The notes: generated from the sequence alone by a model not told the origin. Shown: positions 42,827 to 64,000, numbered from the stretch's first letter. The stretch: DNA of 64,000 nt from Klebsormidium nitens (GCA_000708835.1 DF237083.1:113040-177039); one strand, 5' to 3'. Made by a program: numbers and translations.

Positions 42827-42944
42827 GTGTGTGCAACTAGAAAGGACCGCAAAAAAACTTTTGAATATCACTGAGGCCGCACCGAGGCCGCACAGGACTC
42901 GCGCGCGCTCGCGTAGAATCTGGACAAGTGCCTAACCGAGCCCC

Positions 42945-43182
42945 GTGTAGGGTTGTAGGGTGTAGGGTATGTTTTACTTCCTTTATATTCATTTTTACTC
43001 TCTCCCCTTATGAGATAAAGAATAACCCTACATACCCTACATACTCTACATTCAGTATATAGTGAAAAAAGAAAAAGGTTTTAAAATGAGACTGAAGTCA
43101 GTGGCATATGAGATCAAAATTAATAATGTAGGGTTCGAGTAAATCACCGGCAAAACCCTACACGATCCGGCCAAACCCTCGG
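42945..43182. repeat. Cis-element A: TGTAGGG/CCCTACA iteron array around the core TTCAGTATATAGTGAA (43051-43066)
   Basis: About eight TGTAGGG-type motifs in both orientations, AT-rich spacers, and near-palindrome GACTGAAGTCAGT. Confidence 0.85.
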
Positions 43183-43620
43183 AATCCGCACAAGGGTCAC
43201 ACAAAATCCACACAGGGTTTGCTCCTATTTCTAACCTTCTCTGAATCTACGCGGACTCGCGGCTCAAAGGCAGGAAGTTCCATGCAACGTATAAACGGCG
43301 GCTTCTCTGACGGGCATTGGAAAGGATAGAAACGAGGTCTGTCAAAGTATGGCGGGAGGCCTGCCGGACCTGGTTTCCCCTAATCAGCCACCTAATTCTC
43401 TAAATCCTACGCCTGCAGCAGTTGGCCGGCAATTTGATTATTCCAGAAAGCTCGGCGCTCGGCGTGGTAAGTTATACATGGCCACTGAATTGGTCTTCTT
43501 CTGACGATCATTATAGGAGGATTTTATGTTGGTGTTGATGGCAACATGGTGTACCTTCTCAAGGAGTACACCAACCAGCCCTACTTGACTGTGATTGTCG
43601 GAGCTCCTATTCTTCTGCAG

Positions 43621-44418
43621 ACCTGGGAGGTACAAATGTGACAGACACCACTATTGGAGATGAGTTTGTTCGAGCAGTTCATCTTGCACTCAATCGCAGC
43701 CTTCACATGTCAGGAGGTATGTTCCAAGTTTTCATGATTGTTTCATATCTAAAATTGGTTATGAAGTACTCTATGCTGGTAACTTGTAACACTAAGATAA
43801 TCTGTTCTCGAATGGACCTATCATGATCCAGACTAACGTCGCTGACATTCTCAACATAGCCTTTTGTCCTGTGCAGGATTCCGAACTGTTCCAGATCAGG
43901 CAGTGGCAAATGCTGTCAATCAGGCTCTAGCGCACCCTGTTACTGGACTATCAGCACTTGTCAACCAGGCCCTTGCTGATCCTGTTACTGGTCTGGGAGC
44001 TGTTGTCAACCAAGCCTTGGCACATCCTGTTACTGGTCTAGCGGCTGTTGTCAATCAGGCCATGACTCCCATCTCTCGAAACATAGAATGCCAGCAAGCC
44101 AAGAGTCATAATCATCAGTCCATCGGACGCCGCAACGGATCCCTCCTGACTTTGTCTGATCCAGCCGGCAACATGCCCGCACCTGGACAATTCCCAAGAA
44201 GTGTTGAGGAGCTTAGTCATTTCAGCGATGGGGCAGTGGCAGTGAGGGCAGGAAACCACACGCGGATGTCTTACCTTCTGAATTTCTACGATGTCATTGA
44301 TGAGGTGACAGGTGCGGCTTTCCCTTCACCTCCGGGCGCTCTGCCGGCTGGTCCTGCAGGAGACACAGAATTGGAGCGGATGCAACGGGCTTTGGAAAGA
44401 TTTTTAAGTGAGATATAG
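43621..44418 (+). CDS. Spliced gene inside the viral element: 15-aa repeats plus Mug135-like C-terminal domain (tentative); 5' end unresolved
   Basis: Exons 43621-43716 and 43877-44418, with GTATGT donor, GACTAAC branch point and TGCAG acceptor, in frame. (VNQALA[H/D]PVTGL.A.)x3, then QAKSHN...G..P...FPRSVEEL...LLNFYD...RALERFL, resembling the fungal Mug135-like C-terminal pattern. Confidence 0.6.
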
Positions 44419-44638
44419 GTGAGGCTACCTTCAAACACAAATGAGTTTCTGCTTTTTGCAAGAGCTGATTTATCAAGCGAGTCAGCACTAGATCAGTTGT
44501 TGATACTTAAAGATCTGACCCCAAAGGCAAAGGAAAGAGGTTGGAGAAGAAGACCGCCAGGAGAGCTGACAAGAAGAATTAAGGTGACTTTCTGTTAGCA
44601 CTTAAAAGATTGTGCACTTTTATGTTAAAAAGAGCAAA

Positions 44639-45214
44639 ATGGTTTGTTACGAAGATGCCAAGATTTATGTGATCAGGAACACTCTGAATGACCTGCTTTA
44701 CATTGGAAGCACCACCATAGCTTTGTGCAAAAGGATGACCAGACACCGTTGCGACAGCAGAAAACAAAGATGCAATTCTTCAAAGTTCTACAAAGCTTTG
44801 GCAGAGTTGGGTTCTGAGCATTTCTTCATTGAACTTCTGGAAAAGTATCCGTGTGAGAGCATTGAAGAATTGAAGCGGTATGAGGGACAAATGATTAGAA
44901 AGTTCGATACAGTTAAGAACGGTTTCAATTCAGAGATTGCTGGACGTACGTCTCAAGAGTATAAGCAGGAAGAAAAAGAACTGATAAAGGCAAAATATGA
45001 TGAATCTGGACGTGCCAAAAAAGCTGAGTATTACCAGAATCATAAGGCTGAGAACCATGCAAGACAAAGGTCATGGAGACTAGCACATAAAGACGATGAA
45101 GCATTTCGTGAAGCGTGTCCGCTGTGTCTAAAAGAAATGAGGAGAGATTGCATAAAGCGACACATTAAAACTGTCCACAAAGAAGCCTCTACAGCTCCAC
45201 AATTTCTTGGCTGA
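44639..45214 (+). CDS. GIY-YIG endonuclease with C-terminal C2H2-like finger (191 aa)
   Basis: KIYVIRN...LYIGST...RMTRH, IELLEKYPC, E.Q.I...DTVKNGFN, as in NCLDV/PLV GIY-YIG proteins. CPLC...HIKTVH at the end. Confidence 0.88.
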   Translation: MVCYEDAKIYVIRNTLNDLLYIGSTTIALCKRMTRHRCDSRKQRCNSSKFYKALAELGSEHFFIELLEKYPCESIEELKRYEGQMIRKFDTVKNGFNSEIAGRTSQEYKQEEKELIKAKYDESGRAKKAEYYQNHKAENHARQRSWRLAHKDDEAFREACPLCLKEMRRDCIKRHIKTVHKEASTAPQFLG

Positions 45215-45229
45215 GTTCTGCTATCCTTT

Positions 45230-46439
45230 TTATGCATTTATCAATCTGCTCACGCAAGTCTTTGATTTGTTGCAGCTTGGCGGTCTTCTCGGCTTCCTTC
45301 GCGCTGCCTGCTCAGGTGTCGTAGCGATGTTATAAAAGCCTTGGATGTCGGCAGAATTTCCCATCTGGTAGGCAAGCTCCTCACGAGCCTTGATAGAAGG
45401 ATTAGTAGCTAGGAAAGCAGTGATTTTTAAATGCCTAAGACTATTGACCCCTAGGGAAGTTTTCATAGCCCGTTTGAAGGTATCCGTGACACACTTAGAG
45501 AACGTACCATTAGTGTAGGGATCCTTGTTTGTGTTTTCGAACAGATACTTTCGCTTGTGTTCTGCTAGATTTGTTTTAATCACATCGAATAGCACTCCAG
45601 TCAGCTTCGCCTCATACCTGTCGTATGTTTTTGCTGTTTTGTAATTGCCGATCACCATGTCCACGAATTTGTTTCGAGTATTTAGAAACATTTTGTTCGG
45701 CTCCTCGCTGCCGTTGAATTCTGTCTGGCTCTTAAACACCTCCATCTTGCCGTAATCTTTCAATCTCCTCGGTGGAATCAGTGTGTACATAGAGACCAGC
45801 AGATGATCTTTGCTCGCAAAGTCATCCTTTCGAAGTCGTTTCTCGCACTCTAGCACGTCTTTCCATTGCACAGGCTTGCCGTTCAGCATGATAGAAGCGA
45901 CCTTCGGTGCATTTTCTTTTGCTATATCTTGAGCTGCACCGGCAGCTTCCATCATGGCGTCGTAAAACTTTTGCTGGACAGTGTCAGCCACCTGCAGATT
46001 TGTATGTTTTATGAGCGAGACAAACGCTACCAAGTATCCTGTGCGCGAATTCATGTTTGGATACCGGTCGATGATGTACTTTATCACTTTGTCTGGCTGA
46101 TTGACTAGCTTCTGTATGTATGTTTTTCTCGTTGAGACAACCAGCAATAAAATTGGTCTTCCTGACGTAGTCTGTCTGCGTCTCTGAAGCCAGGTTCTGA
46201 TTGTTCTCAATCTGTCGTGTAGTCTCTTCGATTGTCACACTCTTTTCCTTTCCTTTTCCTTTGGCTGCCCGTCTGGCCGGCTTTGGTTTAGGTGGAGGTG
46301 GAGGTGGAGGTGGAGGTGGAGGGGCTGTTGCTTTGCTTCTGGTCGCTCTACCTACCGCCGCCGCAGCACCTGATGACCTTGGTTCGTCATCAATACTGAT
46401 CACTTTACCTGCGTTTTTGCTGGCTCGTGTTCTTGGCAT
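45230..46439 (-). pseudogene. Tyrosine recombinase/integrase, frameshifted by a 4-bp duplication
   Basis: Catalytic pattern PPRRLKDY (R), GNYKTAKTY (K), NSLRH, QMGNS, GFY (Y). ORFs 45984-46439 and 45230-46210 join into a 401-aa protein if one ATAC of AAC-ATAC-ATAC-AG (about 46114-46121) is removed. Confidence 0.88.
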
Positions 46440-46515
46440 ATTTTGCTTCTTTACTAGAAGGATAATATATAAAACTGGGGTCAGATGTCCGCATTATTTT
46501 CTTGTCAGAATTAAA

Positions 46516-46761
46516 ATGGATTACGATATACCAACAGATCCTGTAGAATTGAAAAGACTGCATGCATATTGCCAACGGCTATACTACCACAGCCTCCCAC
46601 CAGAAAAGAAACAAGTTCTGAATGAGAAACAGCGCATCAGATCTAGAGTGAAGTATCAAACCGACCCAGTACACGCTGAGAAAGTAAAAGAATATCAAAA
46701 GGCACGCTATCACCGTAAGAAAGCCGAGGCGAGTGCTTCGAACACGAATGAAGAAATTTAA
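46516..46761 (+). CDS. Small basic protein, paralogue 1 (Y..DP motif)
   Basis: MDYDIPTDPVELKRLHAY...VKYQTDPVHAEKVKEYQKARY. AT-rich upstream region; similar to the two downstream ORFs. Confidence 0.7.
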   Translation: MDYDIPTDPVELKRLHAYCQRLYYHSLPPEKKQVLNEKQRIRSRVKYQTDPVHAEKVKEYQKARYHRKKAEASASNTNEEI

Positions 46762-46816
46762 TTTTGGTAGAAAACAAAACTACTTAAAGGAATACTTCCT
46801 CTTCATATTAGTAAGA

Positions 46817-47168: not shown

Positions 47169-47235
47169 TTTTTTTGAATTTGCACAAAAAAAGCACTTAA
47201 GAACAATTCAATATATCTGCTTAGTATAAGCAAAC

Positions 47236-47562
47236 ATGGAGGCAATCGCCGACCAACTGCACAGTCTAAAGATCGACCCGGCAAAGTGCGAGGTGAAAAT
47301 TGTTGTCAACAGGGTATACAGCACCAGTGCCAAGCGTTATCACGAAGACCCAAAGTACCGTGAGTCCGTGAAATCAGCGTCACGTGCCCGTACACAGAAG
47401 CTGACGCCCGAACAGAAGGAAGCGAACAAAAAGAGGGTTTTGGACAAGTATCACAGTGATCCTATCTACCGGGCAAAAGCCTTACAGCGTGCACAGGAGC
47501 GACGTGCTCGGAAGAAGGAAGAAAATGCCCGGTTGAAAGCTGAAAAGAAGGGCGAACCCTAA
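47236..47562 (+). CDS. Small basic protein, paralogue 3 (108 aa)
   Basis: YHEDPKYRESVK...KYHSDPIYRAKALQRAQERR. Conserved promoter motif upstream. Confidence 0.75.
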   Translation: MEAIADQLHSLKIDPAKCEVKIVVNRVYSTSAKRYHEDPKYRESVKSASRARTQKLTPEQKEANKKRVLDKYHSDPIYRAKALQRAQERRARKKEENARLKAEKKGEP

Positions 47563-47649
47563 ATATCAAATATTATTATTTTTGTCTTTTAATTTGCACA
47601 AATGAAAAACTACTTAAGGATAATATCTTACAGAATAGTAAAAAGCAAA

Positions 47650-50142
47650 ATGGCACCCCGACAGAACCTTACAGCCTTCCTCTCAAAGCGTAAAGTGGAG
47701 AAATGTTCAGCATTTACTCACACTGGATTAGGTAAGGACTTCCTTGGTTCGTATTACGTCAATGAAGAGGATGTTGACACGTTGCATGACCTGTATATCA
47801 AGTCCTTAGAGGCCGGTGATCGCCTGCACCTGACAGAAAAGCACCGGGAGGGTAAATCTCCGATCTACATCGACTTTGACTTCAAACAGCTGTCTGGAGA
47901 CCGGTTGTATACCCCCGAGCACGTTCGAGAAGTATACCTGGCGATCGCCCAGGGGGCATCACACTACGTCCAGTTCACCCCCGAGGACTTGACCTGTTAC
48001 GTGCTCGAGAAACCGTCCCCCCGACCGGACAAGAACCACCCGTATAAGGATGGTTTCCACCTCATCTTTCCTGACATCGTGACGTCACCAACCGTCCAGC
48101 ACCTGATCCGCAAGAACATCCTAGATTCTAACAGCCTTGCCGAAATTTTCGGAGACTGTGGATTCAAGAACAATTACTCGGACATGTACGACGAAGCGGT
48201 TATCGAGAAAAACAACCTGATGATGTACGGAAGTCAGAAGGTTGACGAGCCTGCAGCCTGGACAGTAAGCTACTTGCTGACTGGGCAGGACGGTGACGAA
48301 GAAGAGTGTGAACTTGAGCCTGCTGAACTGGTCTTGGAACTGTGTGTCCGAAACAAGTTCACGTGCAACCCTACGATCGCGACAGCTACAGCTGAGATTG
48401 AAGCATATGCCGCCGAGCGAGCCAAGAAGGCAGAGAAGCCAGCGCAAGCCAGCTTGTCCAGGTTTGCGGGCAACAATGCCATCACCTTCGACAGGCTTAA
48501 GGCTCTCATTGCTGGTCTCGCGGAGGAGCGGGCGGCCGGTAGAGACAGCTGGTCAAAATGCATGTGGGCAATCATGAATGTCTCCAAGGACAATGGCTTC
48601 AGCGAATTCCAGAAGATGAAGCTGGGTCATCAATTCAGTGAGCTCAGCCACAGCCACTATGACGAGGATGGCGTGGATAAGTTCCTAGCTGACGGGGTCA
48701 AGGAGCACACAAACCCTATTAACCTGGCTACATTGATCCTGTATTTAAAGCAAGACAACCCGGACGTATATGACACTCTGTTCGGCGGCGTGAAGTCTTA
48801 TGATGAGACTAAAATGGAATTTGAGCGTAATCATTTCAAGGTAATGCAGCCACTGTGCTTTGTTGAGGTCGAAGCCGACGATCAAAGCCTATATTACCGT
48901 GGAAAAAGGGAGTTTTTGGAGGCTTATGAGAATCTATATTGCACGGTGAAGAAGGTGGATAAAAACGGAATAGAATATACCGAAAAAGAGGCATTTGTTA
49001 AGTTGTGGTTTGCCGACACTCAGATCCGGACGTACAAAAAGTTGGTCTTCTGTCCGCCGCCTACCCCCGTGCCAGCAGATTGCTTCAACACTTACAACGG
49101 CATGCAAGCGGAAAAGGCGGAGGCTGACGTCAGCTGCGGAAGCATCGAGCCCTTCTTGCGACACGCGGCGGTGCTGTGTAACAATGTTCCCCAGCATACG
49201 GAATACTTCCTCAAATACTTGGCTCATATTGTTCAGTTCCCTGGAAAGCTGTCAAACGTAGCTATAGTTCTCAAGTCTATTGTGGAGGGTGTCGGGAAAA
49301 ATACCTTTCTGGATTTCTTCATGAAGCTAGTGCTGGGGGAGGAGCTATCCTATGAGTCAGCGAATCCTGTCAGAGATCTGTTTTCCCGATTCTCACAGCG
49401 GAGGAAGGAGAGACTAATGATTGTCATTAATGAGACCAGTGGGAAGGACACGCACGCATTCAGTGAGCAAATCAAGGACATGATCACGTCGACTACCTAC
49501 AATCATGAGGAGAAAGGCATCCGACCAATCAAAATGAACAATTACGCCCGGTTGATCTTCACAACCAACAATGACGTCCCCGTAAAAATCGGACAGCACG
49601 ATCGACGGTTCGTGGTCTTTGAGGCTAGCAACGAGCTGGTCGGAAATGCGGAATATTTCAGGAATTTTGCGCAATATGCCGCTGACCCGAACAATGCCTT
49701 GGCGGTTTACGAATATTTAAAATCGCTCGACCTGTCGACTATTCATTTAGAAAACGATCGCCCGAAGACCGAGGAGTACCTTGAGATTCAGAAGAACACC
49801 ATCAAGCCCGAATACCGATTCTTGGGTAGCATGATCGAGATTTATCGGAAAAACCACAACAGCGACGTGGTAGCATTTAAGGGTCTGGATATATTTATAG
49901 AGTTTTCCAAGTGGATGACCCAGGCTATACCGTTGCAAATCACCTCCACACAGTTTGGACGGACACTCAACACGCTGATGAAGCTAACCGACTCGGTTCA
50001 AAAGCGGCGGTTAGGAACCGGGGTGGTTTATGAGATCAATCTACTCAATCTACAGCATTGGATGGTGGAGAAGAAGTATATCGACGACGGAACTGGTCTG
50101 GACGACGTTGAGAGGTCTGTACCGGTATTCAGACCCGAATAA
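47650..50142 (+). CDS. AEP primase - PriCT-2 - SF3 (D5-like) helicase fusion, 830 aa
   Basis: HLTEK...PIYIDFD, KDGFHLIFPDI, MMYGSQK (NCLDV-type AEP); WSKCMWAI (PriCT-2); EGVGKNT Walker A, VINE Walker B, IFTTNN, DRRF (SF3). Confidence 0.93.
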   Translation: MAPRQNLTAFLSKRKVEKCSAFTHTGLGKDFLGSYYVNEEDVDTLHDLYIKSLEAGDRLHLTEKHREGKSPIYIDFDFKQLSGDRLYTPEHVREVYLAIAQGASHYVQFTPEDLTCYVLEKPSPRPDKNHPYKDGFHLIFPDIVTSPTVQHLIRKNILDSNSLAEIFGDCGFKNNYSDMYDEAVIEKNNLMMYGSQKVDEPAAWTVSYLLTGQDGDEEECELEPAELVLELCVRNKFTCNPTIATATAEIEAYAAERAKKAEKPAQASLSRFAGNNAITFDRLKALIAGLAEERAAGRDSWSKCMWAIMNVSKDNGFSEFQKMKLGHQFSELSHSHYDEDGVDKFLADGVKEHTNPINLATLILYLKQDNPDVYDTLFGGVKSYDETKMEFERNHFKVMQPLCFVEVEADDQSLYYRGKREFLEAYENLYCTVKKVDKNGIEYTEKEAFVKLWFADTQIRTYKKLVFCPPPTPVPADCFNTYNGMQAEKAEADVSCGSIEPFLRHAAVLCNNVPQHTEYFLKYLAHIVQFPGKLSNVAIVLKSIVEGVGKNTFLDFFMKLVLGEELSYESANPVRDLFSRFSQRRKERLMIVINETSGKDTHAFSEQIKDMITSTTYNHEEKGIRPIKMNNYARLIFTTNNDVPVKIGQHDRRFVVFEASNELVGNAEYFRNFAQYAADPNNALAVYEYLKSLDLSTIHLENDRPKTEEYLEIQKNTIKPEYRFLGSMIEIYRKNHNSDVVAFKGLDIFIEFSKWMTQAIPLQITSTQFGRTLNTLMKLTDSVQKRRLGTGVVYEINLLNLQHWMVEKKYIDDGTGLDDVERSVPVFRPE

Positions 50143-50210: not shown

Positions 50211-50590
50211 GTGTAGGGTTTGGGAGATTAGTGTAGGGTTTGAGAGGAGAATCGCGAAACCCTACACTATTGTCCTTTTTCCGTTTTTACACTGGTTTCA
50301 GTCTCTCCTTTCCCTTTCCTTTTATATTTCAGTATATAGTGAATGTAGGGTATGTAGGGTATGTAGGGTTATTATGGAACTCAACACGGGGGAAAATAAG
50401 AAAGTCATATAGGGGAAGGCGGGGTCAGCAAGTCTACATACCCTACACCCCGTATAGACTGAATAAATAATGATATTTGGTAATGAAGACTGAATTCAGT
50501 CTTTTAATATTTCTAAACGTTTAAAATGTAGGGTTTCCAGACTTTGCTTGCAAACCCTACACAAATTTCCGTAACCCTACAAACCCTACA
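50211..50590. repeat. Cis-element B: TGTAGGG iteron array, core TTCAGTATATAGTGAA (50328-50343) and 18-bp palindrome AAGACTGAATTCAGTCTT (50486-50503); putative origin/recombination site
   Basis: More than ten TGTAGGG/CCCTACA motifs in inverted pairs around AT-rich tracts, immediately downstream of the primase-helicase stop. Confidence 0.85.
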
Positions 50591-50650: not shown

Positions 50651-51016
50651 ATGTGGTATTATCGTGTGCTTATTGAAGCAATAGACCCTTTAGATGGCGA
50701 CTTGACTTACATTAGCGACTACGTAAAGGCAGGCGTTTTGAATAAATTCGAAGCATTTGTAAGAAGGTATTACCCTGAACACAAATGGCTTGAGAAAAAT
50801 AAGGTGGAAATCACGGAGGAAAACCCTTTCCAGCCGCACGATGAGAGATGTACGGTTGTGACACGCTACGGACTTAGTAAACTACCCGCGACGGACGCCC
50901 GATTACCAACAAGCTGCCCCATCGCGACACCCCTGTCAAACCCTCTGTTGAACTTAGCGGCCGCGTGTTCACCCGCCGCACCAAAGTTCGCGCCGATAGC
51001 CGACGACAGCCTATGA
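50651..51016 (+). CDS. Hypothetical viral protein (121 aa); 3' part overlaps an antisense gene
   Basis: ATG after an AT-rich leader; N-terminal 75 aa look like a normal globular protein. Confidence 0.45.
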   Translation: MWYYRVLIEAIDPLDGDLTYISDYVKAGVLNKFEAFVRRYYPEHKWLEKNKVEITEENPFQPHDERCTVVTRYGLSKLPATDARLPTSCPIATPLSNPLLNLAAACSPAAPKFAPIADDSL

Positions 51017-51144
51017 ATGAGCGGTGCAGACCCGTGCAGAGTCTTCGCCACGTTGCTCGAAACATCGCCAATACGTCGGATGATTTTGCCTGCTGAGTGA
51101 ATACCTTTGAGGACAGAAGAGCCGATGCGTGAAAAAAGTCCCAT
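50866..51144 (-). CDS. Small virion protein with N-terminal amphipathic helix (candidate membrane-lytic protein)
   Basis: MGLFSRIGSSVLKGIHSAGKIIRRIG; preceded by TTTATAAAAC-ATG, the same leader as the MCP gene. Confidence 0.65.
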   Translation of the reverse strand: MGLFSRIGSSVLKGIHSAGKIIRRIGDVSSNVAKTLHGSAPLIHRLSSAIGANFGAAGEHAAAKFNRGFDRGVAMGQLVGNRASVAGSLLSP

Positions 51145-51147
51145 GTT

Positions 51148-52023
51148 TTATAAACTATCCAGAGAATTTAATCCAGTGACTGATTTGATTAGGGAAAGTT
51201 TTGTGTAATCCAAGATTTCACTCAGAATACCCACAGTTCGGTTTTGCCCATCTTGCACATTCTTTTTGTATATCCTCACTAGAAAGGTGATGGTGTAAGG
51301 GTTCAAATAGGTCAGGTCGTTGCCGTATATGTCCTTTATCAGAATTTGCAGCCTGCTTATATTGCGCTCATTTAAGAACATTTCAAACTGGTTGCCAGGG
51401 TTCTGCCAGTGTAGGACAGTAAAAGGAGCTGTGTCAAAAGGGATGACTGCCAGCACATCAGACGGCTTGCACTTCAGGTCTTGGTCTGAGCTGAAGTTAT
51501 CCACGTTCCAGCAGGCAGTTGTGGAGACTCCGGAAGCATGCAAGACCAGCTGATTGACCCCTCCCTTCAAGTCCAGCTGGTTGGTGCTAGTTATGGTTGT
51601 CCCAGACGGTGTGTCTGTACTGTTGAAGCCAAAGGTTTGATAGCTATTGTGTACGAAGGCAAGAGCATGAGGGGTTGAGAACTTGAAGACAGCTCGGTTG
51701 GTATGGTTGTCATAAGTGCAGGTCACACTAGGGTACAGGCGGCTCACAGTAAGGCAAAGATCTCTGTAGCTGTAGTTTCCTGGTGGCACTGTGATGGTGG
51801 TGCTTGCATTCAGGGCATCTGTAAAGGTGAGCTGGTTGTTTAGGCTGTTAACCACGTAATACTGAATTTGCATCGTGAAATCTACCACTGTCAGGCTCAT
51901 CTGATGCTCTGGCATGGCTGTCATTACATCGGTATCAAATTCAAACACAGAATCATAGGAGTTGGTTTGTGCTGACCTTAAAAACAAATATTGACTGTTG
52001 ATGAGCACATTCAGGTCACTCAT
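51148..52023 (-). CDS. Minor capsid protein (penton, single jelly-roll with insertion), 291 aa
   Basis: Beta-rich; YYVVNSLNNQLTF...TITVPPGNYS and LQILIKDIYGNDL...FTLLV-like patterns typical of PLV/virophage minor capsid proteins. Confidence 0.8.
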   Translation of the reverse strand: MSDLNVLINSQYLFLRSAQTNSYDSVFEFDTDVMTAMPEHQMSLTVVDFTMQIQYYVVNSLNNQLTFTDALNASTTITVPPGNYSYRDLCLTVSRLYPSVTCTYDNHTNRAVFKFSTPHALAFVHNSYQTFGFNSTDTPSGTTITSTNQLDLKGGVNQLVLHASGVSTTACWNVDNFSSDQDLKCKPSDVLAVIPFDTAPFTVLHWQNPGNQFEMFLNERNISRLQILIKDIYGNDLTYLNPYTITFLVRIYKKNVQDGQNRTVGILSEILDYTKLSLIKSVTGLNSLDSL

Positions 52024-52042: not shown

Positions 52043-52567
52043 TCATTCGGTCTGGATGATCCCAAGGGTGAGCTGCCAAGGTGGTACCGTGGTGTTTGCA
52101 CCAACCAAGATGTCACTGTCATCCGTGGTATACATGCTCTTAAAAGAGATTGTTAAGGTTCTCTGAACAAAAAGGCTTAGGTCTTGCAACGAAACGCCAT
52201 AGTGTGGATTGCCATTTTCATAATAAGCTCCACCAGCTGTAAGGATGGTTTTTGTTGCAGTTCCTGTTGAACTATCAAAAGACAGAGGCTGTGCTAATTC
52301 TTCGAGATTGATATTGTAAGGATACGTCGGAGAAACTGTCCCCACAAAGAAGAAGTTTGAAACAAACAAGCGACAATTACCCTTGATTGTATCAAATGGA
52401 ACTGAGACATTGCGGAAAGTAAACCCAGTGTGTCCGTCCGAAGTAGCGTCTTTAGATCTAAGCACAAGCTTATACATCCGGTCATAAGGCTTGCTCTGGC
52501 TTACATTCTTGAAACGGATAAGGAGACGGCTGGTGAGGTGCAGATCGTCCTGCAGCAAAGTTGACAT
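52043..52567 (-). CDS. Second penton-like single jelly-roll protein (174 aa)
   Basis: YKLVLRSKDA...FTF.N...CRLFVSNFF...LTISF...WQLTLGI strand pattern; adjacent to the minor capsid gene. Confidence 0.55.
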   Translation of the reverse strand: MSTLLQDDLHLTSRLLIRFKNVSQSKPYDRMYKLVLRSKDATSDGHTGFTFRNVSVPFDTIKGNCRLFVSNFFFVGTVSPTYPYNINLEELAQPLSFDSSTGTATKTILTAGGAYYENGNPHYGVSLQDLSLFVQRTLTISFKSMYTTDDSDILVGANTTVPPWQLTLGIIQTE

Positions 52568-53013: not shown

Positions 53014-53037
53014 TTTATATGTGCTAATATAATAAAA

Positions 53038-53937: not shown

Positions 53938-54541
53938 TAGCAAGGTCGCGCATAGCTTTTGACACTTTCGAGTTGATTTCATCACGAGCAGCCACATGCA
54001 TCATGTCTCGTTGGGTTGGTCTCGCAGCCGTTAGCTTTGCAACCTCCTTCGCCACCTCCTTTTTTACAGTCTTTATAAACCTTCTTTTTTGCTTGCGCTG
54101 GTAGTGGTCGTCATCGCTCTCGGAGGAGGCGGACGAATCTGAATCAGACTCGTAGATCACCTTCTTCACCTTCTTGACTGGCTTCTTCGCCTTCTTGACC
54201 TTGACCACCTCGACCTCCGCCTCAGATTCTTCTTGCGGCTCTGGCTCAGGTGCTTTGGGCTCAGGTTCAGGTTTGAAAGTCTTTTCTAGTGCTTGCACCT
54301 TCTTAACTCGTTCTTCAAAAGTTTTTTGCTTTAGTGCTTTTTCTTTCTCCGTAAGTTCCTTCATTGCTTGCTTTTTAAGTGCTGCTTTCTCCCGCATAAG
54401 AGCCATCTGCTTCAACTTCTCGGGGCTGCATGGCTTTTTCGGCTTACCATTTGCCCCTAGAGCAGGCGCGGCGGGAGCTTCCACCGTCTCCTCGACTGCT
54501 TCCGCAACCTCTTCGATCGGCTCTATAGACGTGTCACTCAT
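53915..54541 (-). CDS. Lys/Glu-rich hypothetical viral protein (208 aa)
   Basis: Intact ORF with TAAATG start; charged low-complexity sequence with an acidic SDSDSSASSESDDD patch; overlaps the ATPase 3' end by 23 bp. Confidence 0.7.
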   Translation of the reverse strand: MSDTSIEPIEEVAEAVEETVEAPAAPALGANGKPKKPCSPEKLKQMALMREKAALKKQAMKELTEKEKALKQKTFEERVKKVQALEKTFKPEPEPKAPEPEPQEESEAEVEVVKVKKAKKPVKKVKKVIYESDSDSSASSESDDDHYQRKQKRRFIKTVKKEVAKEVAKLTAARPTQRDMMHVAARDEINSKVSKAMRDLAIKSVFPE

Positions 54542-54552
54542 TTACAGAGTAC

Positions 54553-55056
54553 TTAGAAAAAAAATTCACTGTAATATCTGTTTTCTCTGACAGATTTTGC
54601 AGGTACGAGCTTCTGAAGGGATAATATATAGGTAAGTGTGCCCTTTAAATCCAGTGTATTCCACCGCTTTTCAACGGGTGGCACATTCACGATCAGCTTC
54701 TCCCCACGCTGGGATGCAGTCGTGCCCGTAAGGCAAGTAAATCCGCTCACATTCGTCTGCGTAAGATCGGGTAGGCTGAGGTCAGGCAGCTCCTTATAAC
54801 CAATCTTGTTTGCAGGAGCTATGTTCTTCCTCTGGTCAATCATGGTAAGCGAATTCCCGTAAAGGTCAGCCTTACATGGGAGGTTCCACGCTAATTTATC
54901 GTCCGGCTGTGCTAGCTCGTCGTAGTCTGCTTCAACGGGCATGCGAACAACTTTAGGTAGCGAACGGTTGTCCTTTGGGGCTGTGTAAGGCTGCTCATTA
55001 GGCTTCAGCTTCTCGGGGAACATGTTAGCTAAAGGTGTCTTAAACGCGACTGCCAT
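54553..55056 (-). CDS. Hypothetical viral protein (167 aa)
   Basis: Intact ORF packed between the MCP gene and the Lys-rich gene on the same strand. Confidence 0.65.
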   Translation of the reverse strand: MAVAFKTPLANMFPEKLKPNEQPYTAPKDNRSLPKVVRMPVEADYDELAQPDDKLAWNLPCKADLYGNSLTMIDQRKNIAPANKIGYKELPDLSLPDLTQTNVSGFTCLTGTTASQRGEKLIVNVPPVEKRWNTLDLKGTLTYILSLQKLVPAKSVRENRYYSEFFF

Positions 55057-55094
55057 TCTTTATACAATAGAACAAATAATAAAAATCAATCTGC

Positions 55095-56306
55095 TTACCA
55101 AACCACACTTACTTGGCGGTTCGGACCTACCTCCATTAGCGCTGTACACTCAACAAACACCGTGGGCAGGTAGCCAGAACCTGTACCTGTCGTCTGCCAA
55201 GTGATGGTCGAGGCAGAACCACGGGTGTCCAGACCAGAGCTTAGCCTGGACGAACCTTCATCGTTGTCGACGTTGAACTTGAAGTAGTGGAAGAATCCGC
55301 TTCCCTTAAACTTCGTAATTGAATCGAGTGATCCATCCATGGCACCCACCATATCAGCAGACAGACCCATGTTGTGCAAGTTCTCCATCCAGATTTGCTC
55401 TGAAGTCAGTGGTAAAGATGGGAATCTTACTCCATTTACAGCAAACACCGAGTCCACCACATCCGTGGCACACCTTGTAAAGTACGCGCTTGAGCGCAAA
55501 TTGGCGTCTAGTGCGTTGGTCAAGTAAGTTGTCGAGTTCTGGAAGGTAGCCCAGACCCCATCAACGCTCTGAGAGCTTACCGTCATCCTCAGATTCTGAG
55601 CAACTGAACCAGCATTCCCCTGGAAAGTCAAGTAGTACTTGAATGGGATTTTCACACCACCGTTGCTCAGCCTCTGTTGAACGATCTGAGAGTAAGAGCC
55701 GTCGTCAATGCTTATCACCTGGCAAAGAGCCTGAAGCTTGTCAAGACTCCATGTTCTGGTCGTAGAGTCTGCATGAGCCAAAAGAACGTTTGTTCCAGCA
55801 AGCTTGATCTGGAGGCGCACGTGTCCAAGAATTGAGGTGTCCAGGTAGCGGGGCTGAGCGCTAGACAAGAAACCAAGGAAATGAGAGATGGCAACCTTAC
55901 CACTGTAGCCATCGGTATTAGCAGCAGCCGGAAGAGCTGTAACATCACGAGCCACTTGCATCGCTTTCCTTTGAGTAGTTTTGTCAGCACCATAGTAGTC
56001 GATCAAAGCGGTTGAAAGATAGTTGGTCATCTGAGAACCGGGTCCTACTTGAATTCCGTTAACAAGTACGGTAACCTGATCGATCAAAGACTCGACATTT
56101 CTGGGAGCGTTCGTACCAGCCCCAGTGGCCAGATCGCCATACAACGTAAAAGCATCCAGGTTCACGATGCTGTTCTCGGGGAGGGTGATGGAGATCGTAT
56201 CCCCGGCATTAGCCTTGACGGGCGTCTGAGGGTACAGGAGGAAAGTATTCCTAGAAACGTTGTCGAGCTTCTCCAGATAGTACTTAAGGACGGATGGGTA
56301 CGACAT
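55095..56306 (-). CDS. Major capsid protein (double jelly-roll, PLV type), 403 aa
   Basis: LKYYLEKLDNVSRNTFLLYPQT...AGDTISITLPENSIVNLDAF...PRNVESLIDQVTVLVNG and C-terminal SGLDTRG...FVECTALMEVG..RQVSV; this pattern is characteristic of PLV (Tetraselmis-virus-like) MCPs as recalled, not searched. Confidence 0.9.
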   Translation of the reverse strand: MSYPSVLKYYLEKLDNVSRNTFLLYPQTPVKANAGDTISITLPENSIVNLDAFTLYGDLATGAGTNAPRNVESLIDQVTVLVNGIQVGPGSQMTNYLSTALIDYYGADKTTQRKAMQVARDVTALPAAANTDGYSGKVAISHFLGFLSSAQPRYLDTSILGHVRLQIKLAGTNVLLAHADSTTRTWSLDKLQALCQVISIDDGSYSQIVQQRLSNGGVKIPFKYYLTFQGNAGSVAQNLRMTVSSQSVDGVWATFQNSTTYLTNALDANLRSSAYFTRCATDVVDSVFAVNGVRFPSLPLTSEQIWMENLHNMGLSADMVGAMDGSLDSITKFKGSGFFHYFKFNVDNDEGSSRLSSGLDTRGSASTITWQTTGTGSGYLPTVFVECTALMEVGPNRQVSVVW

Positions 56307-56351
56307 GTTTTATAAATTGAGTTCAGATATTAATTTCGCCGTTGACTTTGT

Positions 56352-56996
56352 TCATCTTTTCATGCGTATACCTGATTTTTTCAGAGAGAAATTTGTGCCA
56401 AACATTTCATTCAACTTGTTGTATAGATTTCGATCGACGTTCACAAACCCTCGCTTAGTAGTATCGGTTACTATATTCATCCTCGCTGCCATCAGCAGAA
56501 TCTCTTGCTTTTCAATAGAAGAAATTTTGCTTTGAGCATTCAAAGATTTCCATCTACTTTGAAAAACTTCCATTTGCGCTCTTGTTAGCACACCTTGCGT
56601 CTCTTGCCTCTGTTCCTTTTCCTCCTCAGTATCATATACTGCTGTTTCCTTCCCTTTAGCACTTGGTCTCGGTCTCGGTCTCGGTGCTGACTTCGCTCTC
56701 TCTTTCCTTGCTGGCTTTGGCTTTACTTCCTCTTTCTCTTCAGGTCTTTCCTCCACCGCCTTCTTTTCTTCAGTTGTATCCTTTCCATACTTCTGAGCTA
56801 GCTTATACAACTTTTTTATGTTTGTTTCTAGGCTGTCGCTTTTGATGAAGTCCGCCCAAGGACTCTCGATGGTTTCGAACGGCTGAATGAACGGCGTCTG
56901 TCTTGTGTAAGCGAAGCGACCCACCACGCCACCCCCCAGCTTAAAGAAGGGATTCTGCTCTTGACATTCCTCGCAACACTCTTCGTAGGATTTCAT
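56352..56996 (-). CDS. Hypothetical viral protein (214 aa)
   Basis: Intact ORF with a charged central region and an RPRPRP micro-repeat. Confidence 0.65.
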   Translation of the reverse strand: MKSYEECCEECQEQNPFFKLGGGVVGRFAYTRQTPFIQPFETIESPWADFIKSDSLETNIKKLYKLAQKYGKDTTEEKKAVEERPEEKEEVKPKPARKERAKSAPRPRPRPSAKGKETAVYDTEEEKEQRQETQGVLTRAQMEVFQSRWKSLNAQSKISSIEKQEILLMAARMNIVTDTTKRGFVNVDRNLYNKLNEMFGTNFSLKKSGIRMKR

Positions 56997-57014
56997 GAAG
57001 GTAAGTTGAGATAT

Positions 57015-60000
57015 TTAAAGGATTCCCGTGTAAATGAAACAGCCATAGAGTTGCGGTGAACCTGTAATGCTATTCATATTAATTACCAGTTGATTGAATG
57101 AGTTAATCGAATAATTATTTACTGACATTCCATTATTGAAGAAGTCCCTTTGACTAAAAGTTGCGACCTGACCTACTTGGCGACTGATATAGATGGAAAC
57201 CATGCAAGACCATGGGTATGTGATATTTCTAGTCTTCACGAAGAAATCAAGTCTTCCCATTGACGTGACTAAAGTACTACCCCATATTGGTGATAAATCT
57301 ATCGTACCAGCAAGACCACTGAATGCCGTATATCCACTTGAAACAATGACGGGTCCTTGCCCTGCATTAGACCAAGCCGGGACGTTGAGGGCATCCGTTC
57401 CAATAGAATATGTACTGGCGGCAAAACTTGCGGTAAGCGTACCGTTGACCGCTGTTCGAACTGACCCTCCAGACGATGCATTCACTGTTGTCAGTGTTCC
57501 TGACGAACTTTGTGTAAGAGCATAACCAGTGGTATTGTGGTTATTAAAATGCGAGAAAGTAGCATCACCCGGGAAAACGTTTGATGATATTTGCGCAGTC
57601 TGAATAATCGCTCCGTTTCTAAACTTTGAACTACCATCATTGTATAGCACGAGATTTGACTGGGTCTGAGCAGAGTTCAGGAATACAATCTGTCCTAATT
57701 GTGTGCCTATCACGCCGCTACCGTTTAATTGCAAATAACCTTGAACATTAAGTTGATTTGTGACGTTGACCATTCCTCCGACGTTCAACTTGTTTCCAAG
57801 ATTTGAACAATTACCGTTGGTATCAACGGAAAGCAGATTAGACCATGTTGTATAGTTCGAATTGAAGGGTTTACATACGTTGAAAGCAGCCGCAGAATAA
57901 CTACCACTGATGACGGCTCTCACTTGACCACCAGCCCACTGACCAAATCCGTACAGATCACTTCCACCATAATTTGCAACAGTCATCCATCCAGGGTCAG
58001 AAGCAGGAAACTGTAAACCGCCAGTAGCACATGTTGCAACTCCGTTCACGCAATTACTGGCGTTGACGGCGGCGTTCGATACAGTAGTGAAGGCGGTACT
58101 TGTGTTGCTCAAGACGGCTGGGACAGAGATCAACGAGGAGTACGGCAACGAACCTGACAGAGTCGTCGCTTGAAGCGTAGTACAATTGATAGTACCGCCG
58201 ACGTCGAGCGGATACCCAGGAGAAGCATTCGATATACCCACAAAACCGTTTCCTGCAACTATGGTAAGTGGCCGGAGGCTATTCCAAGAGCCATTGGATG
58301 TTCCACTTAGAAGCATGTAATATTGACTACCGTCGTACCTCTATATGAAACTGTTGTTAGTTGAACCATACCAGTAGCGTGACTGTCCGTAAGAATCGTA
58401 TCCAAAGAGTGAGTTGGATGCCGCTACTGAATAACCGACATTAACATTACATGTCTGAACCATTCCACGAACATAGAGACTCCCCGTATCAGCCGTAAGA
58501 CTCATGAGGCAGCTCTCGTTATTGTTCTCCCAAATATACCCCTGCTGAGTACCGCTACCCGTCCGCATTCGGATATGGTGAGCAGTTCGTCCGTCAAGAC
58601 TGATGCATGCCGTATTACTTGCTGCACTTTTACCAGCACCAGACTGGCACATATACATCGACCAGTTCCCATCATTTGCATCCCAAAATCTAAGACCTTT
58701 TTGATAACCCGTATCGCTTTGAGTGTTGATGCTAGTTATACCATACGAAGTAAGAGTGCCGCTACTAGACATATTTCTAGCAGCATTAAGAACTCCCGCA
58801 ATGTTAACATTTCCAGAATTTGATAAAGTTGTACTTGCTATTGTTCCAGAATTAGAGAGAGTCGCCGATGAGATGAAACCACCCACCTGCAGGTTGCCCG
58901 CATTAGTCAGATTACCGACAAAAGACGTGTCGCCCGTCCTGCAGTTAAACCAATGCCTATCATTACAGTCAGTCAAGCACTTAAACTCAAACCTGACCAA
59001 GATGCTAACCCTCCTTGATTACTACCACCGTTAGACGTACCAGGGAGACTGCCGTCGACGCCTTCACAATAAACATGTACCCCAAGATTCGGGTCTGATG
59101 GAACGCCTACCACCAAATTTGATGTAAATATTCTCATGTTGTTTGAAGGAGTTTGAAGCGAATAGACTGACAGCGACGTATTAGACACACCTACGTAAGA
59201 CGGGGCTCCCGTTATATTGCTCCAGCCAAGACTCGAACTGTTGAAGAGGAGAGCTGGTACGCTAGTGAGTAGACTATATGCCACGTTGTTGGAAAGCAGA
59301 GCAGGAAGCCCCGATAGGTTCGAGTAGCCGAGCAAACTTGAGTTCGACAACAAGCTCGGGACGCTAGTGAGTAGACTATATGCCACGTTGTTGGAAAGCA
59401 GAGCAGGAAGCCCCGATAAATTCGAGTAGCCGAGCAAACTTGTGTTTGACAACAAGCTCGGTACGCTCGTGAGATAACCCCACCCTAGCGAACCCGCCAG
59501 AAGATTCGCAACGAGAGTCCCACCAACCTGAAAATTGCCAGAGTTAGAATGAGTCGCCGAAGTCAGCGTAGTCGCAACGTTTGCCGTTCCATTTACATCG
59601 AGAGTCGCCGAGGGTGCAGTGGTACAGACCCCGAACCGTCCGTTGCCCATACAGTTAAATGATGCTGAACCAAGAGGTTGTCCCCACATTCCTATTGCTC
59701 CGTAATTACTAGGACTTGCGTTCAAATAATATGAGAATGCATGCCAAGATGTATTGTAATTCGAAACGGTGTTGACGCCAACATTTAGCAAATGATAAGA
59801 ATTGGAATTCGGCGAAGGAGTGTAGAGTGATGACGAGATTCCGCTGGTTGTGGTCATATTACTGGTTAAAGCGAGACCTCCTGAAATTGTGGTAGCACCA
59901 GCGGCGAGCGTCCCAGTGATGGTCGCGTTATTAGAAACTAGAAGGTTAGAGCCGACACTTAGGTTGGAGCGAACATTTACATGGTTATTCGACGTCTGAA

Positions 60001-61621: not shown

Positions 61622-61660
61622 TTACATTATTGACACAGAAAAAAATGATCTTTTTAAGAT

Positions 61661-62473
61661 ATGCATCTCCTCAAGTGGGTCGGAGGAAAGACGAAGATAA
61701 TTGACCAGGTCATCGAGTCTTTTCCAAAGAGTATGAACAATTACCACGAACCTTTCCTGGGGGGAGGAAGTGTTTTGTTAGCACTTCTCAAGAGTGATAT
61801 CGAAGTCAAGGGAACGATCGTAGCGAGCGACGCTAATCCTCACCTGATCAACTTCTTCAAAGCGGTCAGAGACGACCCAGGACACCTTTCTTACGAGCTT
61901 TGTCAGCTAAAAGATGACCCGAAGCACGAAACCCCTGAAGCTTACTACTATCTGCTAAGAGATCGGTTCAACATTGCCCCCACTCCCGCTCTATTTCTTT
62001 TCCTTAATCGGACTTGCTTTAGAGGACTATATCGCGAGAGTAAGCGAGGGTTCAATTCCCCGTACGGATGGTACAAAAAACCTTTGTTTCCGACTCTTGA
62101 AGACATTTTAGCTGTCTCGCGACTGATCCAGGGGGTCGAGTTCATATGTCAGGGCTTCGAAGACAGCCTGGTGCGTGTACAAAAAGGAGACTTTGTATAT
62201 CTTGACCCACCTTACTATCCGCTGAGCGAGACGGCTTCATTCGTGGACTATGTGGCGGGGGGTTTTGTCAATCACGAATTACTTTTCTCGACCTTGAAGG
62301 CTCTCCCTTACTCCTTCGTGTTGAGTAATTCTGACGCTGATGTGGTCTTGAAGTCTTTCCCAGAGGATCAATACGAGGTTTTGAAGATCCCTTGCAGTCG
62401 TTCACTGAAACCAGGTGCTAAGGGTTTGCGGGTCAATGAGGTGCTGATCAGTACGAGAGCGGACTTCGTGTGA
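61661..62473 (+). CDS. dam: Dam-like (D12 class) N6-adenine DNA methyltransferase, 270 aa
   Basis: LKWVGGKT, YHEPFLGGGSV (motif I), NRTCFRGLYR, FVYLDPPY (motif IV), LSNSD. Confidence 0.9.
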   Translation: MHLLKWVGGKTKIIDQVIESFPKSMNNYHEPFLGGGSVLLALLKSDIEVKGTIVASDANPHLINFFKAVRDDPGHLSYELCQLKDDPKHETPEAYYYLLRDRFNIAPTPALFLFLNRTCFRGLYRESKRGFNSPYGWYKKPLFPTLEDILAVSRLIQGVEFICQGFEDSLVRVQKGDFVYLDPPYYPLSETASFVDYVAGGFVNHELLFSTLKALPYSFVLSNSDADVVLKSFPEDQYEVLKIPCSRSLKPGAKGLRVNEVLISTRADFV

Positions 62474-64000
62474 AAGATCCTTTCCAACCCGCCGAAGAAG
62501 GAATTGACTGCATATTCACAGTCCCAGAGACTAGGTCGTTGAAATTCATGGAATCATTGGGATAAAACGTCCCCGACGAGTCTAGAATAGGACGGGCGTT
62601 GTCCCCGTACAATCCAGGAGTCATACTGGAATTGGCTTGGAAACCAGTTCCGATCTGCATCACGGAACTTCGCACGACCCCGCCACAGACCACGTCTTTT
62701 CCTGTGGACAGATTGCTGTTAACGAAGACGTTCGAATTGGTTGCGATCAGTGCGGGGGTGTTCAGGTTGCTTTTTATGCTCAGCGTGTTCACGTTAGTCA
62801 TGTTGAGATTCGAGTCGATAGTCAGGTTGCTCGTGATCTGATTGCTTCCGTTCGAGTAGCTCATTGTTAGGCTGAGACCACCATAATCTTGAATCAAGGT
62901 CGAGTAATTTGACCCGTTCAGGTTCTTAAGAATGATGTTGCTCGAATTTAATTGAAGACCAGTTATGCTGTTGTTCAAAAAGGGATTTAAGTTGCTTGTA
63001 CACTGAAGAAAGACCAGGTTGCTTTCGCTCACCGTAAAGTTGCTCGCACTGATGCGAACGTAGTTCGACTGCCCCGTACTCAGGTTCAGATTGCAAGATG
63101 ATTGAACATTTAAGTCTTGAGCTGCGTTCGATCCGTTGCTCAATGTCGTCCAGTTAGATAAAGAAAGTGCTGATATGAATTTTGTGGAAACATTACTATT
63201 CGCGGTGATGCTATTCGTGATAATCTGGCTGTTGATGTACAAGGGAGAGTTGCACGAGGTCGAGATTCCAGACCCCGCTAGGTTTATCATGCCAAGCTGG
63301 ACATTAGATGAGGAAAGCTGATTCGAGCCCATAGAGAGAGTGCTCAGGTAAGCAGCAGACCGTCCAACATCTAGAACCAGATTGGAGGTCGCTGTCGTTG
63401 CGTAGACATTGGTGTTGTTTTTTGAAAAGTTTTGATGGGGGACACTAAAGATCTTCGAGTTGGTCTCATCAAAATAGAGGTTTGACTGAATACCTATGTC
63501 ATACCCGTTGGTCGAGAAGGGTCTGTTGGTTAGCTTGCTCCAATCAACATATATATTCGAAGACCCGTTATCATTCGAGCCCAAGGCGTCTGAAATCGGA
63601 TCCTTGATGTTGTCGGAAAGCTTCGGTGTGTTTCCCAGCAAAGACTGCAGCTGTTGGTACATGTCATAACCTAATTGTCCCAGATCGTATGCGCCCTGCG
63701 CAAGGGCTAGAATATCGAGCCCGTTGCTCTCGGAAATGTTCTTCAAAGATGCCCAGTCGATCTTGCTGTTTGAGTCGATCACGGCGTTATTTGATCTGTC
63801 TAAAAGTTGCGAGAGGATGTAAACATTTGAACCAAAGATTGTCGTTGCATCTAGGTAGTTCGTAAGCACGGAAGAAGCCGCCAGGTTGCTGGTGCAGGTA
63901 AGGGTGTTCGTTTCTACGTGGACTGCTTCAATCACACCCGATGCTAAAGAATCAAGAATAAGATTACTGTGTGACGTTTGGGCTATGGTTAAGTCTAACC
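62448..64000 (-). CDS. Second Ser/Asn-rich fibre/spike-like protein; 5' end beyond the window
   Basis: Frame stays open to the window edge (LDLTIAQTSHSNLILDSLASGVIEA...); beta-rich SN repeats similar in composition to the first fibre gene. Confidence 0.7.
   Translation of the reverse strand, partial: LDLTIAQTSHSNLILDSLASGVIEAVHVETNTLTCTSNLAASSVLTNYLDATTIFGSNVYILSQLLDRSNNAVIDSNSKIDWASLKNISESNGLDILALAQGAYDLGQLGYDMYQQLQSLLGNTPKLSDNIKDPISDALGSNDNGSSNIYVDWSKLTNRPFSTNGYDIGIQSNLYFDETNSKIFSVPHQNFSKNNTNVYATTATSNLVLDVGRSAAYLSTLSMGSNQLSSSNVQLGMINLAGSGISTSCNSPLYINSQIITNSITANSNVSTKFISALSLSNWTTLSNGSNAAQDLNVQSSCNLNLSTGQSNYVRISASNFTVSESNLVFLQCTSNLNPFLNNSITGLQLNSSNIILKNLNGSNYSTLIQDYGGLSLTMSYSNGSNQITSNLTIDSNLNMTNVNTLSIKSNLNTPALIATNSNVFVNSNLSTGKDVVCGGVVRSSVMQIGTGFQANSSMTPGLYGDNARPILDSSGTFYPNDSMNFNDLVSGTVNMQSIPSSAGWKGSFTRSPLSY

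Follow-up and report, generated by a model that had tools for sequence, protein, structure and literature searches.

Does the compact block of virus-like genes on scaffold DF237083.1 of the Klebsormidium nitens assembly GCA_000708835.1 belong to an integrated Polinton-like virus (PLV), and how does this copy replicate? The window analysed here is a stretch of 64,000 nucleotides, record positions 113,040-177,039 of this 180,630 bp scaffold. All positions are window coordinates (window position = record position - 113039), and the scaffold ends at 67,591 in these terms. In the first 42 kb of the window the genes are ordinary eukaryotic ones (STT3, a SWEET transporter, ERO1 and a CCCH zinc-finger gene), while the virus-like block occupies 42827-64000. 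An earlier note had read this block as an endogenous PLV in a streptophyte alga. The host is indeed a streptophyte, as the species and the genes at 1-42 kb indicate, and the element type was borne out by the capsid fold, a primase-helicase without pPolB and a tyrosine recombinase. We consider it highly probable that the contig is a copy of a PLV in the K. nitens assembly, from a lineage with several divergent copies. Two clusters of palindromic 9-mers, most likely recognition sites of the helicase, accompany these genes. The features that carry the argument are the following (ORF, open reading frame).

42945-43185, no strand: left-terminal 9-mer cluster (cluster 2), an inverted, ~80%-identical copy of the 50215-50460 block
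45192-46439, minus strand: putative tyrosine recombinase gene with two frame changes against full-length relatives of 390-420 aa
47602-50142, plus strand: primase-helicase, with an AEP primase N-half and a DUF5906 (D5/VapE-like, SF3-type) helicase C-half
50212-50585, no strand: internal 9-mer cluster (cluster 1), candidate replication origin, ~70 nt 3' of the helicase stop codon
51148-52023, minus strand: probable penton (minor capsid) protein, 291 aa; mavirus penton matches in Foldseek, low-confidence model
53038-53937, plus strand: putative A32/FtsK-HerA-type packaging ATPase, 299 aa; Walker A and B motifs, phrog_2666
55095-56306, minus strand: major capsid protein, double jelly-roll by structure prediction and Foldseek, 403 aa
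57015-59000, minus strand: fibre-like gene with one frame change; a single ORF in the sister copies L002 and L003
58973-61621, minus strand: fibre-like gene, 882 aa, with a 102-nt tandem duplication (95% identical) at 59256-59459
62448-64000, minus strand: fibre-like gene whose 5' part enters the N gap at the window end

Capsid and packaging genes

The structure of the 403-aa protein was predicted with AlphaFold2 from an alignment of 97 sequences (pLDDT 93.1, pTM 0.90). In Foldseek, the model matched the PBCV-1 capsid protein Vp54 (E 3.7e-17, TM 0.62-0.65) and the double jelly-roll capsid proteins of an iridovirus, of faustovirus and of Sputnik (the last at E 1e-11). The best match in the viral library was an unnamed entry (E 2.8e-35, TM 0.85). 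The ORF at 55095-56306 is confirmed as the gene of a double jelly-roll major capsid protein. The earlier note had staked its reading on this fold in advance, and the fold was clearly recovered. The capsid family comprised 765 representatives at E<=1e-3, mostly of 383-455 aa. Sequence and profile searches of this family gave no Pfam or PDB match, and structure comparison alone succeeded. An exact look-up of the protein returned no record, and scans of viral contigs with the capsid alignment and with the single protein gave no usable pattern and no confirmed relative.

The protein encoded at 53038-53937 has a Walker A motif (GSRGQGKT), a Walker B motif (VVVDD) and a match to phrog_2666, annotated as 'terminase' in PHROG (5e-6). 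Its metagenomic homologue (alignment A6; tblastn E 5e-14 to 1e-19) matched Pfam Pox_A32 at 2.4e-6. Direct searches with the single sequence and two profiles gave no Pfam or convincing PDB match, and there was none in NCBIfam or in phage records. The packaging ATPase named in the earlier note was thus supported, more weakly than the capsid protein, as a putative A32-like enzyme.

The same note had counted two penton-like genes. One of them, the 291-aa protein, is probably the penton: the top six Foldseek matches of its model were all mavirus penton (6g41/6g42, E 3e-5 to 2e-4, with TM only ~0.27 from a poor model, pLDDT 51.7, built on a shallow alignment). The other, of 174 aa, found no family or structural evidence in domain and PHROG searches. 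The fibres survive as four Ser/Asn-rich, fibre-like ORFs, which had no family match and whose identity among copies is 30-86%, vs. 93-98% for the ATPase. A candidate lytic peptide, also proposed before, could not be identified.

Sister copies and selection

The capsid protein has close relatives annotated in K. nitens, with four KFL_ gene models. Sister elements of the window copy are present in K. nitens (L004, scaffold DF237485.1, and L005, scaffold DF237950.1) and in the JGI metagenome samples 3300060284 and 3300060285 (L002, L003, L006, L007 and L008). The metagenome contigs measure 26.4 kb (L002, with a capsid protein 93% identical to that of the window), 78.8 kb (L003), 136 kb (L006) and 22.9 kb (L008). 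Gene order is kept between the window and the sisters from the recombinase through the fibre genes.

Core genes are under strong purifying selection (dN/dS 0.015-0.09 between copies). In comparisons of the window with L002 or L008, dN/dS was 0.07 for the capsid gene, 0.015-0.03 for the ATPase, which is 93-98% identical to its sisters in amino-acid sequence, and 0.05-0.06 for the 291-aa probable penton, with dS of 0.7-2. Such low dN/dS at this dS indicates that the copies diverged as working viruses and not by decay after one insertion. In L003 and L006, many genes are scattered over two or three frames, while L002, L004, L005 and L008 are largely colinear in single frames. Consequently, the lineage holds both fresh and decayed insertions.

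The core genes of the window copy had been described as intact, which does not hold for two of them. Its recombinase gene (45192-46439) lies in three pieces over two frames when compared with six full-length relatives, which corresponds to two frame changes, and the fibre gene at 57015-59000 occupies two frames vs. the single ORF of L002 and L003 (one frame change). The remaining genes are uninterrupted and colinear with their relatives, and the final fibre gene enters the N gap. The window copy resembles a provirus in decay more than a competent virus.

Primase-helicase and recombinase

The primase-helicase contains AEP_C962R (4e-47) and DUF5906 (4e-17), and no polymerase domain was found in the scanned ORFs, in agreement with the replication by an AEP-SF3 helicase, and not by pPolB, that the earlier note had proposed. 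The two halves of the protein have different relatives. Sister elements match the N-half at 40% identity, and their helicases do not align with the C-half, whose relatives, at 25-34% identity, are the helicases of metagenomic elements bearing the same 21-mer as the window (see below). The domain scans agreed with this division. Sister helicases showed AEP_C962R, PriCT_2, D5_N and a weak DUF5906, whereas the window helicase combines a sister-like AEP_C962R with a strong DUF5906 that resembles the motif-bearing group.

The gene at 45192-46439 on the minus strand appears to encode a tyrosine recombinase, on somewhat weaker support than the capsid gene. Its relatives of 390-420 aa conserve the pattern R..K..LRH..G(N/H)S..Y (alignment A3, invariant R and K columns), with conserved catalytic-type R, K, R and Y columns. 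Profile matches were obtained to the integrase of PDB entry 3nkh (E 0.0023) and to a XerC-like protein (0.047), and Pfam Phage_integrase was detected in 6 of the 17 relatives. As to integration by a tyrosine recombinase, the identity of the gene therefore stood, and its two frame changes speak against its function in this copy.

Palindromic 9-mer clusters

The two clusters are blocks rich in GTAGGGT/ACCCTAC, ~80% identical over ~240 nt and in inverted orientation; a 19-mer within them had six matches vs. none expected. In cluster 2, an array of GTAGGGT-containing 9-mers (42947-42970) opposes an array of ACCCTACAT (43024-43053) across a spacer of ~55 nt, and further single 9-mers occur at 43128 and 43155. 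Cluster 1 consists of three palindromic sub-units, of which the central one is made of three GTAGGGTAT 9-mers (50345-50371) opposing an ACCCTAC arm at 50440. The 21-mer AACCCTACATACCCTACATAC, which is three tandem 9-mers, is present in both clusters (43024-43044 and 50350-50370).

This exact 21-mer was found in 95 metagenome stretches (L009-L103) from many unrelated samples. Across lineages its flanks are unrelated, and the common part is the three tandem 9-mers. An inverted array lies 70-100 nt upstream in 64 of the 73 distinct instances, so that the unit is a palindrome of arrays around an AT-rich spacer. A homologue of residues ~400-830 of the window helicase is encoded in 30 of these 95 loci (25-34% identity, E down to 1e-59), and in ~20 of the 30 this gene is followed by the motif at a distance of 100-970 nt, as in the window. 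Some of the loci also encode recombinase, capsid or ATPase homologues.

The sister elements have the identical architecture at the same place, made of their own 9-mers. The arrays were located at 15860-16230 in L002, 15300-15660 in L003, 5520-5870 in L005, 5270-5620 and 13107-13205 in L008, and 5590-5900 and 13619-13719 in L006. The 9-mer types and the helicases compare as follows.

L002: 9-mer GGGAAGGGT; helicase taken as reference
L003: 9-mer GGGAAGGGT; helicase 83% identical to L002
L008: 9-mer GGAAGGGCA; helicase 80% identical to L002
L006: 9-mer GGAAGGGCA; helicase 71% identical to L002
L005: 9-mer GGGGAGGGC; helicase 69% identical to L002
Window: 9-mer GTAGGGTAT; helicase N-half 40% identical to L002, C-half unalignable

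The 9-mer type follows helicase similarity and not the recombinase; the window recombinase is 90% identical to P0168 of L006, an element with a different 9-mer. In L006 and L008 there is also a second cluster, built of the 9-mer typical of these elements, on the far side of the recombinase and cargo genes. The homology between these two elements stops ~40 nt past this second cluster, which therefore marks the left terminus. The two clusters of an element are direct repeats in L006 and L008 and inverted in the window.

From their position and sequence, the 9-mer clusters are most likely recognition sites of the helicase, and replication origins are the likeliest role for them. Origins of replicons with SF3 helicases, such as the sites of polyomavirus large T and papillomavirus E1, are built of short repeated sites, arrayed in opposite orientations on the two sides of an AT-rich spacer and near the gene of the helicase. 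Such an inverted layout suits the head-to-head loading of two helicase rings. Unlike those origins, the clusters of the window are predicted sites, composed of 9-mers with 37-70-nt spacers, and there are two per genome, one of them terminal. The helicase also differs from those of polyomaviruses and papillomaviruses in being fused to an AEP primase.

The window copy appears to have gained a foreign helicase C-half together with both clusters. A more general reading, to which we give about an even chance, is that the 9-mer palindromes are PLV origins read by the C-half of the helicase, and that this specificity and both origins were swapped jointly while the capsid and integration modules were kept. 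The window element would be a natural example, since its GTAGGGTAT clusters and helicase half match a widespread aquatic PLV group and its capsid module and recombinase match the sisters. The searchable literature contained no description of the 9-mer motif, of iterons linked with PLVs or of such a replicon swap.

Other functions of the clusters were weighed against this reading. They could be recombinase sites (att or telomere-resolution sites), a miniature transposon, or terminators between convergent genes; they are palindromic and lie between convergent genes, one of them is terminal on the recombinase side, and the motif adjoins a recombinase gene in several metagenome loci (L018, L069). 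However, 90%-identical recombinases pair with entirely different 9-mers, and it is the helicase C-half that changes along with the 9-mer. The spacers, at 37-70 nt, exceed the length of recombinase core sites, and the occurrence of direct clusters in L006/L008 and inverted ones in the window is hard to fit to site-specific recombination sites but of no consequence for symmetric origins. Copies of a transposon would share their spacers and flanks, which here differ between lineages. We therefore regard these other functions as unlikely. An insertion resembling a miniature inverted-repeat transposable element of the host was also considered for the GTAGGGT blocks, as sister loci lack the motif. 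It was rejected because the motif is found in PLV contigs whose flanks are unrelated, and because other 9-mers occupy this site in the sisters.

Should the clusters be origins, PLV replicons could be sorted, and module exchange traced, by their sequence. As a candidate cis-element, the palindromes vary in step with the helicase and turn up in many metagenomes. Together with the apparent replicon swap, these helicase-linked palindromes are the part of the locus worth following.

Linkage to host DNA and the termini

The only N run inside the window is at 42246-42826, and the next one begins one base past the window end (64001-65078). The span 42827-64000 is thus exactly one assembly contig flanked by two N gaps, so its linkage to host DNA is provided by scaffolding only. 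With N runs at 42246-42826 and from 64001, no host-virus junction was found in contiguous sequence for the window copy, and the earlier claim of an endogenous element next to plant-type genes was left without contiguous sequence on either side. In L006 and L008, no gap separates the element from adjoining DNA with coding sequence for a PHD finger, a retrotransposon-type aspartyl protease and an aquaporin fragment, so that integration into eukaryotic genomes does occur in this lineage. The window copy is presumably integrated as well.

Alternatively, the contig would not be integrated here at all, but would stem from a PLV that is free or episomal, or from a different organism in the culture, having been joined to the host contig by scaffolding. 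The coincidence of the element with exactly one contig between two N runs, shortly before the scaffold end, suits this explanation, and both other K. nitens copies also lie at scaffold starts. The first bases of the contig, too, may belong to the element: a 14-mer at 42852-42865, ~90 nt outside the terminal cluster, has counterparts in L006 and L008 that agree with it in relative position and orientation, which is weak evidence in this direction. Repeated elements, however, usually break short-read assemblies, so that a position at scaffold ends is expected of true insertions as well. Moreover, K. nitens holds several divergent copies, some with frame breaks, the sister copies continue gap-free into eukaryotic DNA in metagenome contigs, and a broken recombinase and a broken fibre gene would be unusual in a replicating virus. 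A contig that is foreign to this locus is accordingly quite improbable, and an integrated PLV copy is preferred.

By comparison with L006 and L008, the left terminus of this PLV copy would lie at or left of ~42.9 kb. The ORF at 43340-44418 had been considered as a host gene marking the junction; it was dropped because the terminal 9-mer cluster lies outside that ORF. A search for a tRNA as target of the recombinase found no tRNA within the window, CpG depletion as a mark of long residence gave no clear signal, and a scan of the metagenome for an empty site found nothing.

On the right side, homology among the relatives extends >850 nt beyond an ORF with DUF5754 (66.43-66.72 kb in window terms) and passes the scaffold end, and the right terminus of the window element is therefore missing. 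Consequently, the element is at least ~24.7 kb long, including the N gap, with an inferred left terminus and a right one beyond the scaffold end. The description as near-complete is not borne out, as the last fibre gene runs into the N gap and the homology of the relatives continues past the scaffold. The DUF5754 ORF itself (96 aa, Pfam 4.5e-10; 278-568 of L001, window-equivalent 66,429-66,719) is kept in all copies near the right side.

Several points weigh against the overall reading. No contiguous sequence or read links the contig to host DNA, and the scaffold stops ~3.6 kb beyond the contig. The penton and ATPase assignments depend on weak or transitive matches, the fibre label was derived from Ser/Asn/Thr-rich composition, position and variability, and the frame changes could be assembly errors. 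The metagenome loci were picked by the 9-mer motif itself, and the 30 of 95 with a helicase homologue has no independent denominator. The origin function is suggested by position, architecture and covariation. Finally, no search returned a named PgVV protein, and membership of the PgVV group would follow from a published statement only (PMC10120064).

Relation to known elements

The element is a genuine PLV copy, of a kind already known, and such capsid genes had been counted in its host before. Bellas et al. 2023 (PMC10120064) list seven capsid genes for Klebsormidium_nitens BANV01 in their Table S1, and up to 216 for Mesostigma viride, and report PgVV-group capsid genes in Chlorophyta and Streptophyta. 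A 2026 preprint describes dsDNA viral regions in 168 Streptophyta assemblies, and phycodnavirus-like genes were found in K. flaccidum by Gallot-Lavallée and Blanc 2017 (PMC5294986). Since earlier publications cover endogenous PLV capsid genes of Klebsormidium and other streptophyte algae, the window element does not extend the known host range; the extension toward land plants proposed in the earlier note was anticipated by PMC10120064. That survey counts the capsid genes of K. nitens and gives no description of the window element. What the window element may offer specialists is a complete map of the genes of a streptophyte PLV lineage, which has several divergent copies and is subject to strong purifying selection.

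With the endogenous PLVs of green algae and protists (PgVV- and TsV-type, PMC10120064), the element shares what appears to be a unit of 15-30 kb, a double jelly-roll capsid protein, a probable penton, a packaging ATPase, a primase-helicase in place of pPolB, a tyrosine recombinase and multiple copies per genome. The window copy differs in its chimera-like helicase, in a Dam methylase and a GIY-YIG cargo gene that its sisters lack at these positions, and in its broken recombinase. Virophages (mavirus, Sputnik; Maveriviricetes) have a similar set of capsid genes, and the best structural matches of the 291-aa protein are to the mavirus penton. They differ in that no cysteine protease, rve integrase or pPolB was found in the window by domain scans, and the capsid protein of Sputnik was a far weaker match (E 1e-11) than the PLV-type entry of the viral library (E 3e-35). 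Polintons/Mavericks share the module of double jelly-roll capsid protein, probable penton and A32-like ATPase and the integration into eukaryotic genomes, but their defining pPolB and retroviral-type integrase were not found in the available window sequence. Domain search of the ORFs returned no protease, no pPolB and no rve integrase, in a sequence that does not reach the element's right end.

That the block is instead a fragment of an endogenous giant virus, a phycodnavirus-like insertion as reported in K. flaccidum, is extremely improbable. In its favour, the closest matches among solved structures are capsid proteins of giant viruses, PBCV-1 for one, giant-virus-like genes were reported in this genome (PMC5294986), and giant viruses also have AEP_C962R and A32-like domains. 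Against it, the capsid protein is small (403 aa, as in its family of 765 representatives, mostly 383-455 aa), its best viral match (TM 0.85) is far closer than any giant-virus capsid protein (TM ~0.65), and the probable penton resembles that of mavirus. In the sisters, the unit of ~25 kb ends at a defined terminus beside eukaryotic genes, and it is found again as complete metagenome contigs of 23-26 kb. No other giant-virus hallmark gene was found in domain scans.

As a PLV, the element would form an icosahedral capsid from the double jelly-roll major capsid protein and the penton, into which the A32-like ATPase would package the DNA. The Ser/Asn-rich fibre-like proteins may serve attachment. 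The AEP-primase/SF3-type helicase would replicate the genome, probably starting at the palindromic 9-mer clusters just 3' of its own gene and at the left terminus, and the tyrosine recombinase would integrate the element. In the window copy, the helicase C-half and both clusters would have been exchanged from another PLV lineage, with the sister-type capsid module and recombinase kept. By analogy with virophages, the lifestyle of the element could depend on a giant virus, and the host carries giant-virus inserts (PMC5294986).

Other genes of the element

The remaining genes of the block are listed below.

43340-44418, plus strand: cargo ORF that looks spliced by eye (GT..AG-like boundaries), with three 45-nt tandem repeats at 43904-44061
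44612-45214, plus strand: GIY-YIG homing-type endonuclease (PF01541, 1e-7; TIGR01453 group I intron endonuclease, 1e-14)
46513-46761, plus strand: small conserved ORF, 82 aa, with homologues in L002, L003, L005, L006 and L008 at 40-77% identity
46866-47168, plus strand: small conserved ORF, 100 aa, in all sister loci at 76-84% identity across ~60% of its length
47236-47562, plus strand: orf108, 108 aa, present in the window copy only; promoter-like motif AATTTGCACAAA..ACTTAAG upstream
50866-51144, minus strand: orf92, conserved, 92 aa, 85-92% identity in all sisters, dN/dS 0.03-0.08
52043-52567, minus strand: ORF of 174 aa, 49-62% conserved in sisters
52591-53016, minus strand: ORF of ~140 aa
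53915-54541, minus strand: Lys/Glu-rich ORF, 208 aa
54553-55056, minus strand: ORF of 167 aa (relatives 136 aa)
56352-56996, minus strand: orf214, 214 aa
61661-62473, plus strand: Dam-family N6-adenine DNA methyltransferase (PF02086, 4e-46; TIGR00571, 9e-59)

The left arm (42.9-45.2 kb) is not common to the sisters, which hold other genes there. The cargo ORF at 43340-44418, searched through its largest ORF only, had no Pfam match, no metagenome relative and no relative in the fetched loci. The GIY-YIG gene, which likely starts at an ATG a few codons inside the ORF, is missing from this position in the sisters, and homologues of 32-34% identity occur elsewhere in L003, L004 and L005. The Dam methyltransferase gene is flanked by two fibre-like genes, both on the other strand. 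None of the sister loci covering that region has it, which makes it a lineage-specific acquisition. An ORF at 50651-51016 on the plus strand, overlapping orf92 on the opposite strand, is probably spurious. A search of Rfam gave no match.

The motif AATTTGCACAAA(N4-12)ACTTAAG occurs in exactly two copies (47177-47201 and 47591-47618; none expected), ~30 nt before the ATG of orf108 and before the second ATG of the primase-helicase. Judged by its position, it may be a promoter of the replication genes, and it suggests that translation of the helicase probably begins at the second ATG (47650). Both orf92 (51142-51154) and the capsid gene (56304-56316), on the minus strand, have the 13-mer TTTATAAAACATG as their translation start. 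Among the other structural genes, several have starts of the TAAATG or AAAATG type with very short AT-rich leaders.

The public K. nitens gene models merge separate viral ORFs through invented introns (53915-56996 and 47236-50142). KFL_001340310 (417 aa) combines orf214, part of the capsid gene and downstream ORFs, and an 844-aa model fuses orf108 with the helicase.

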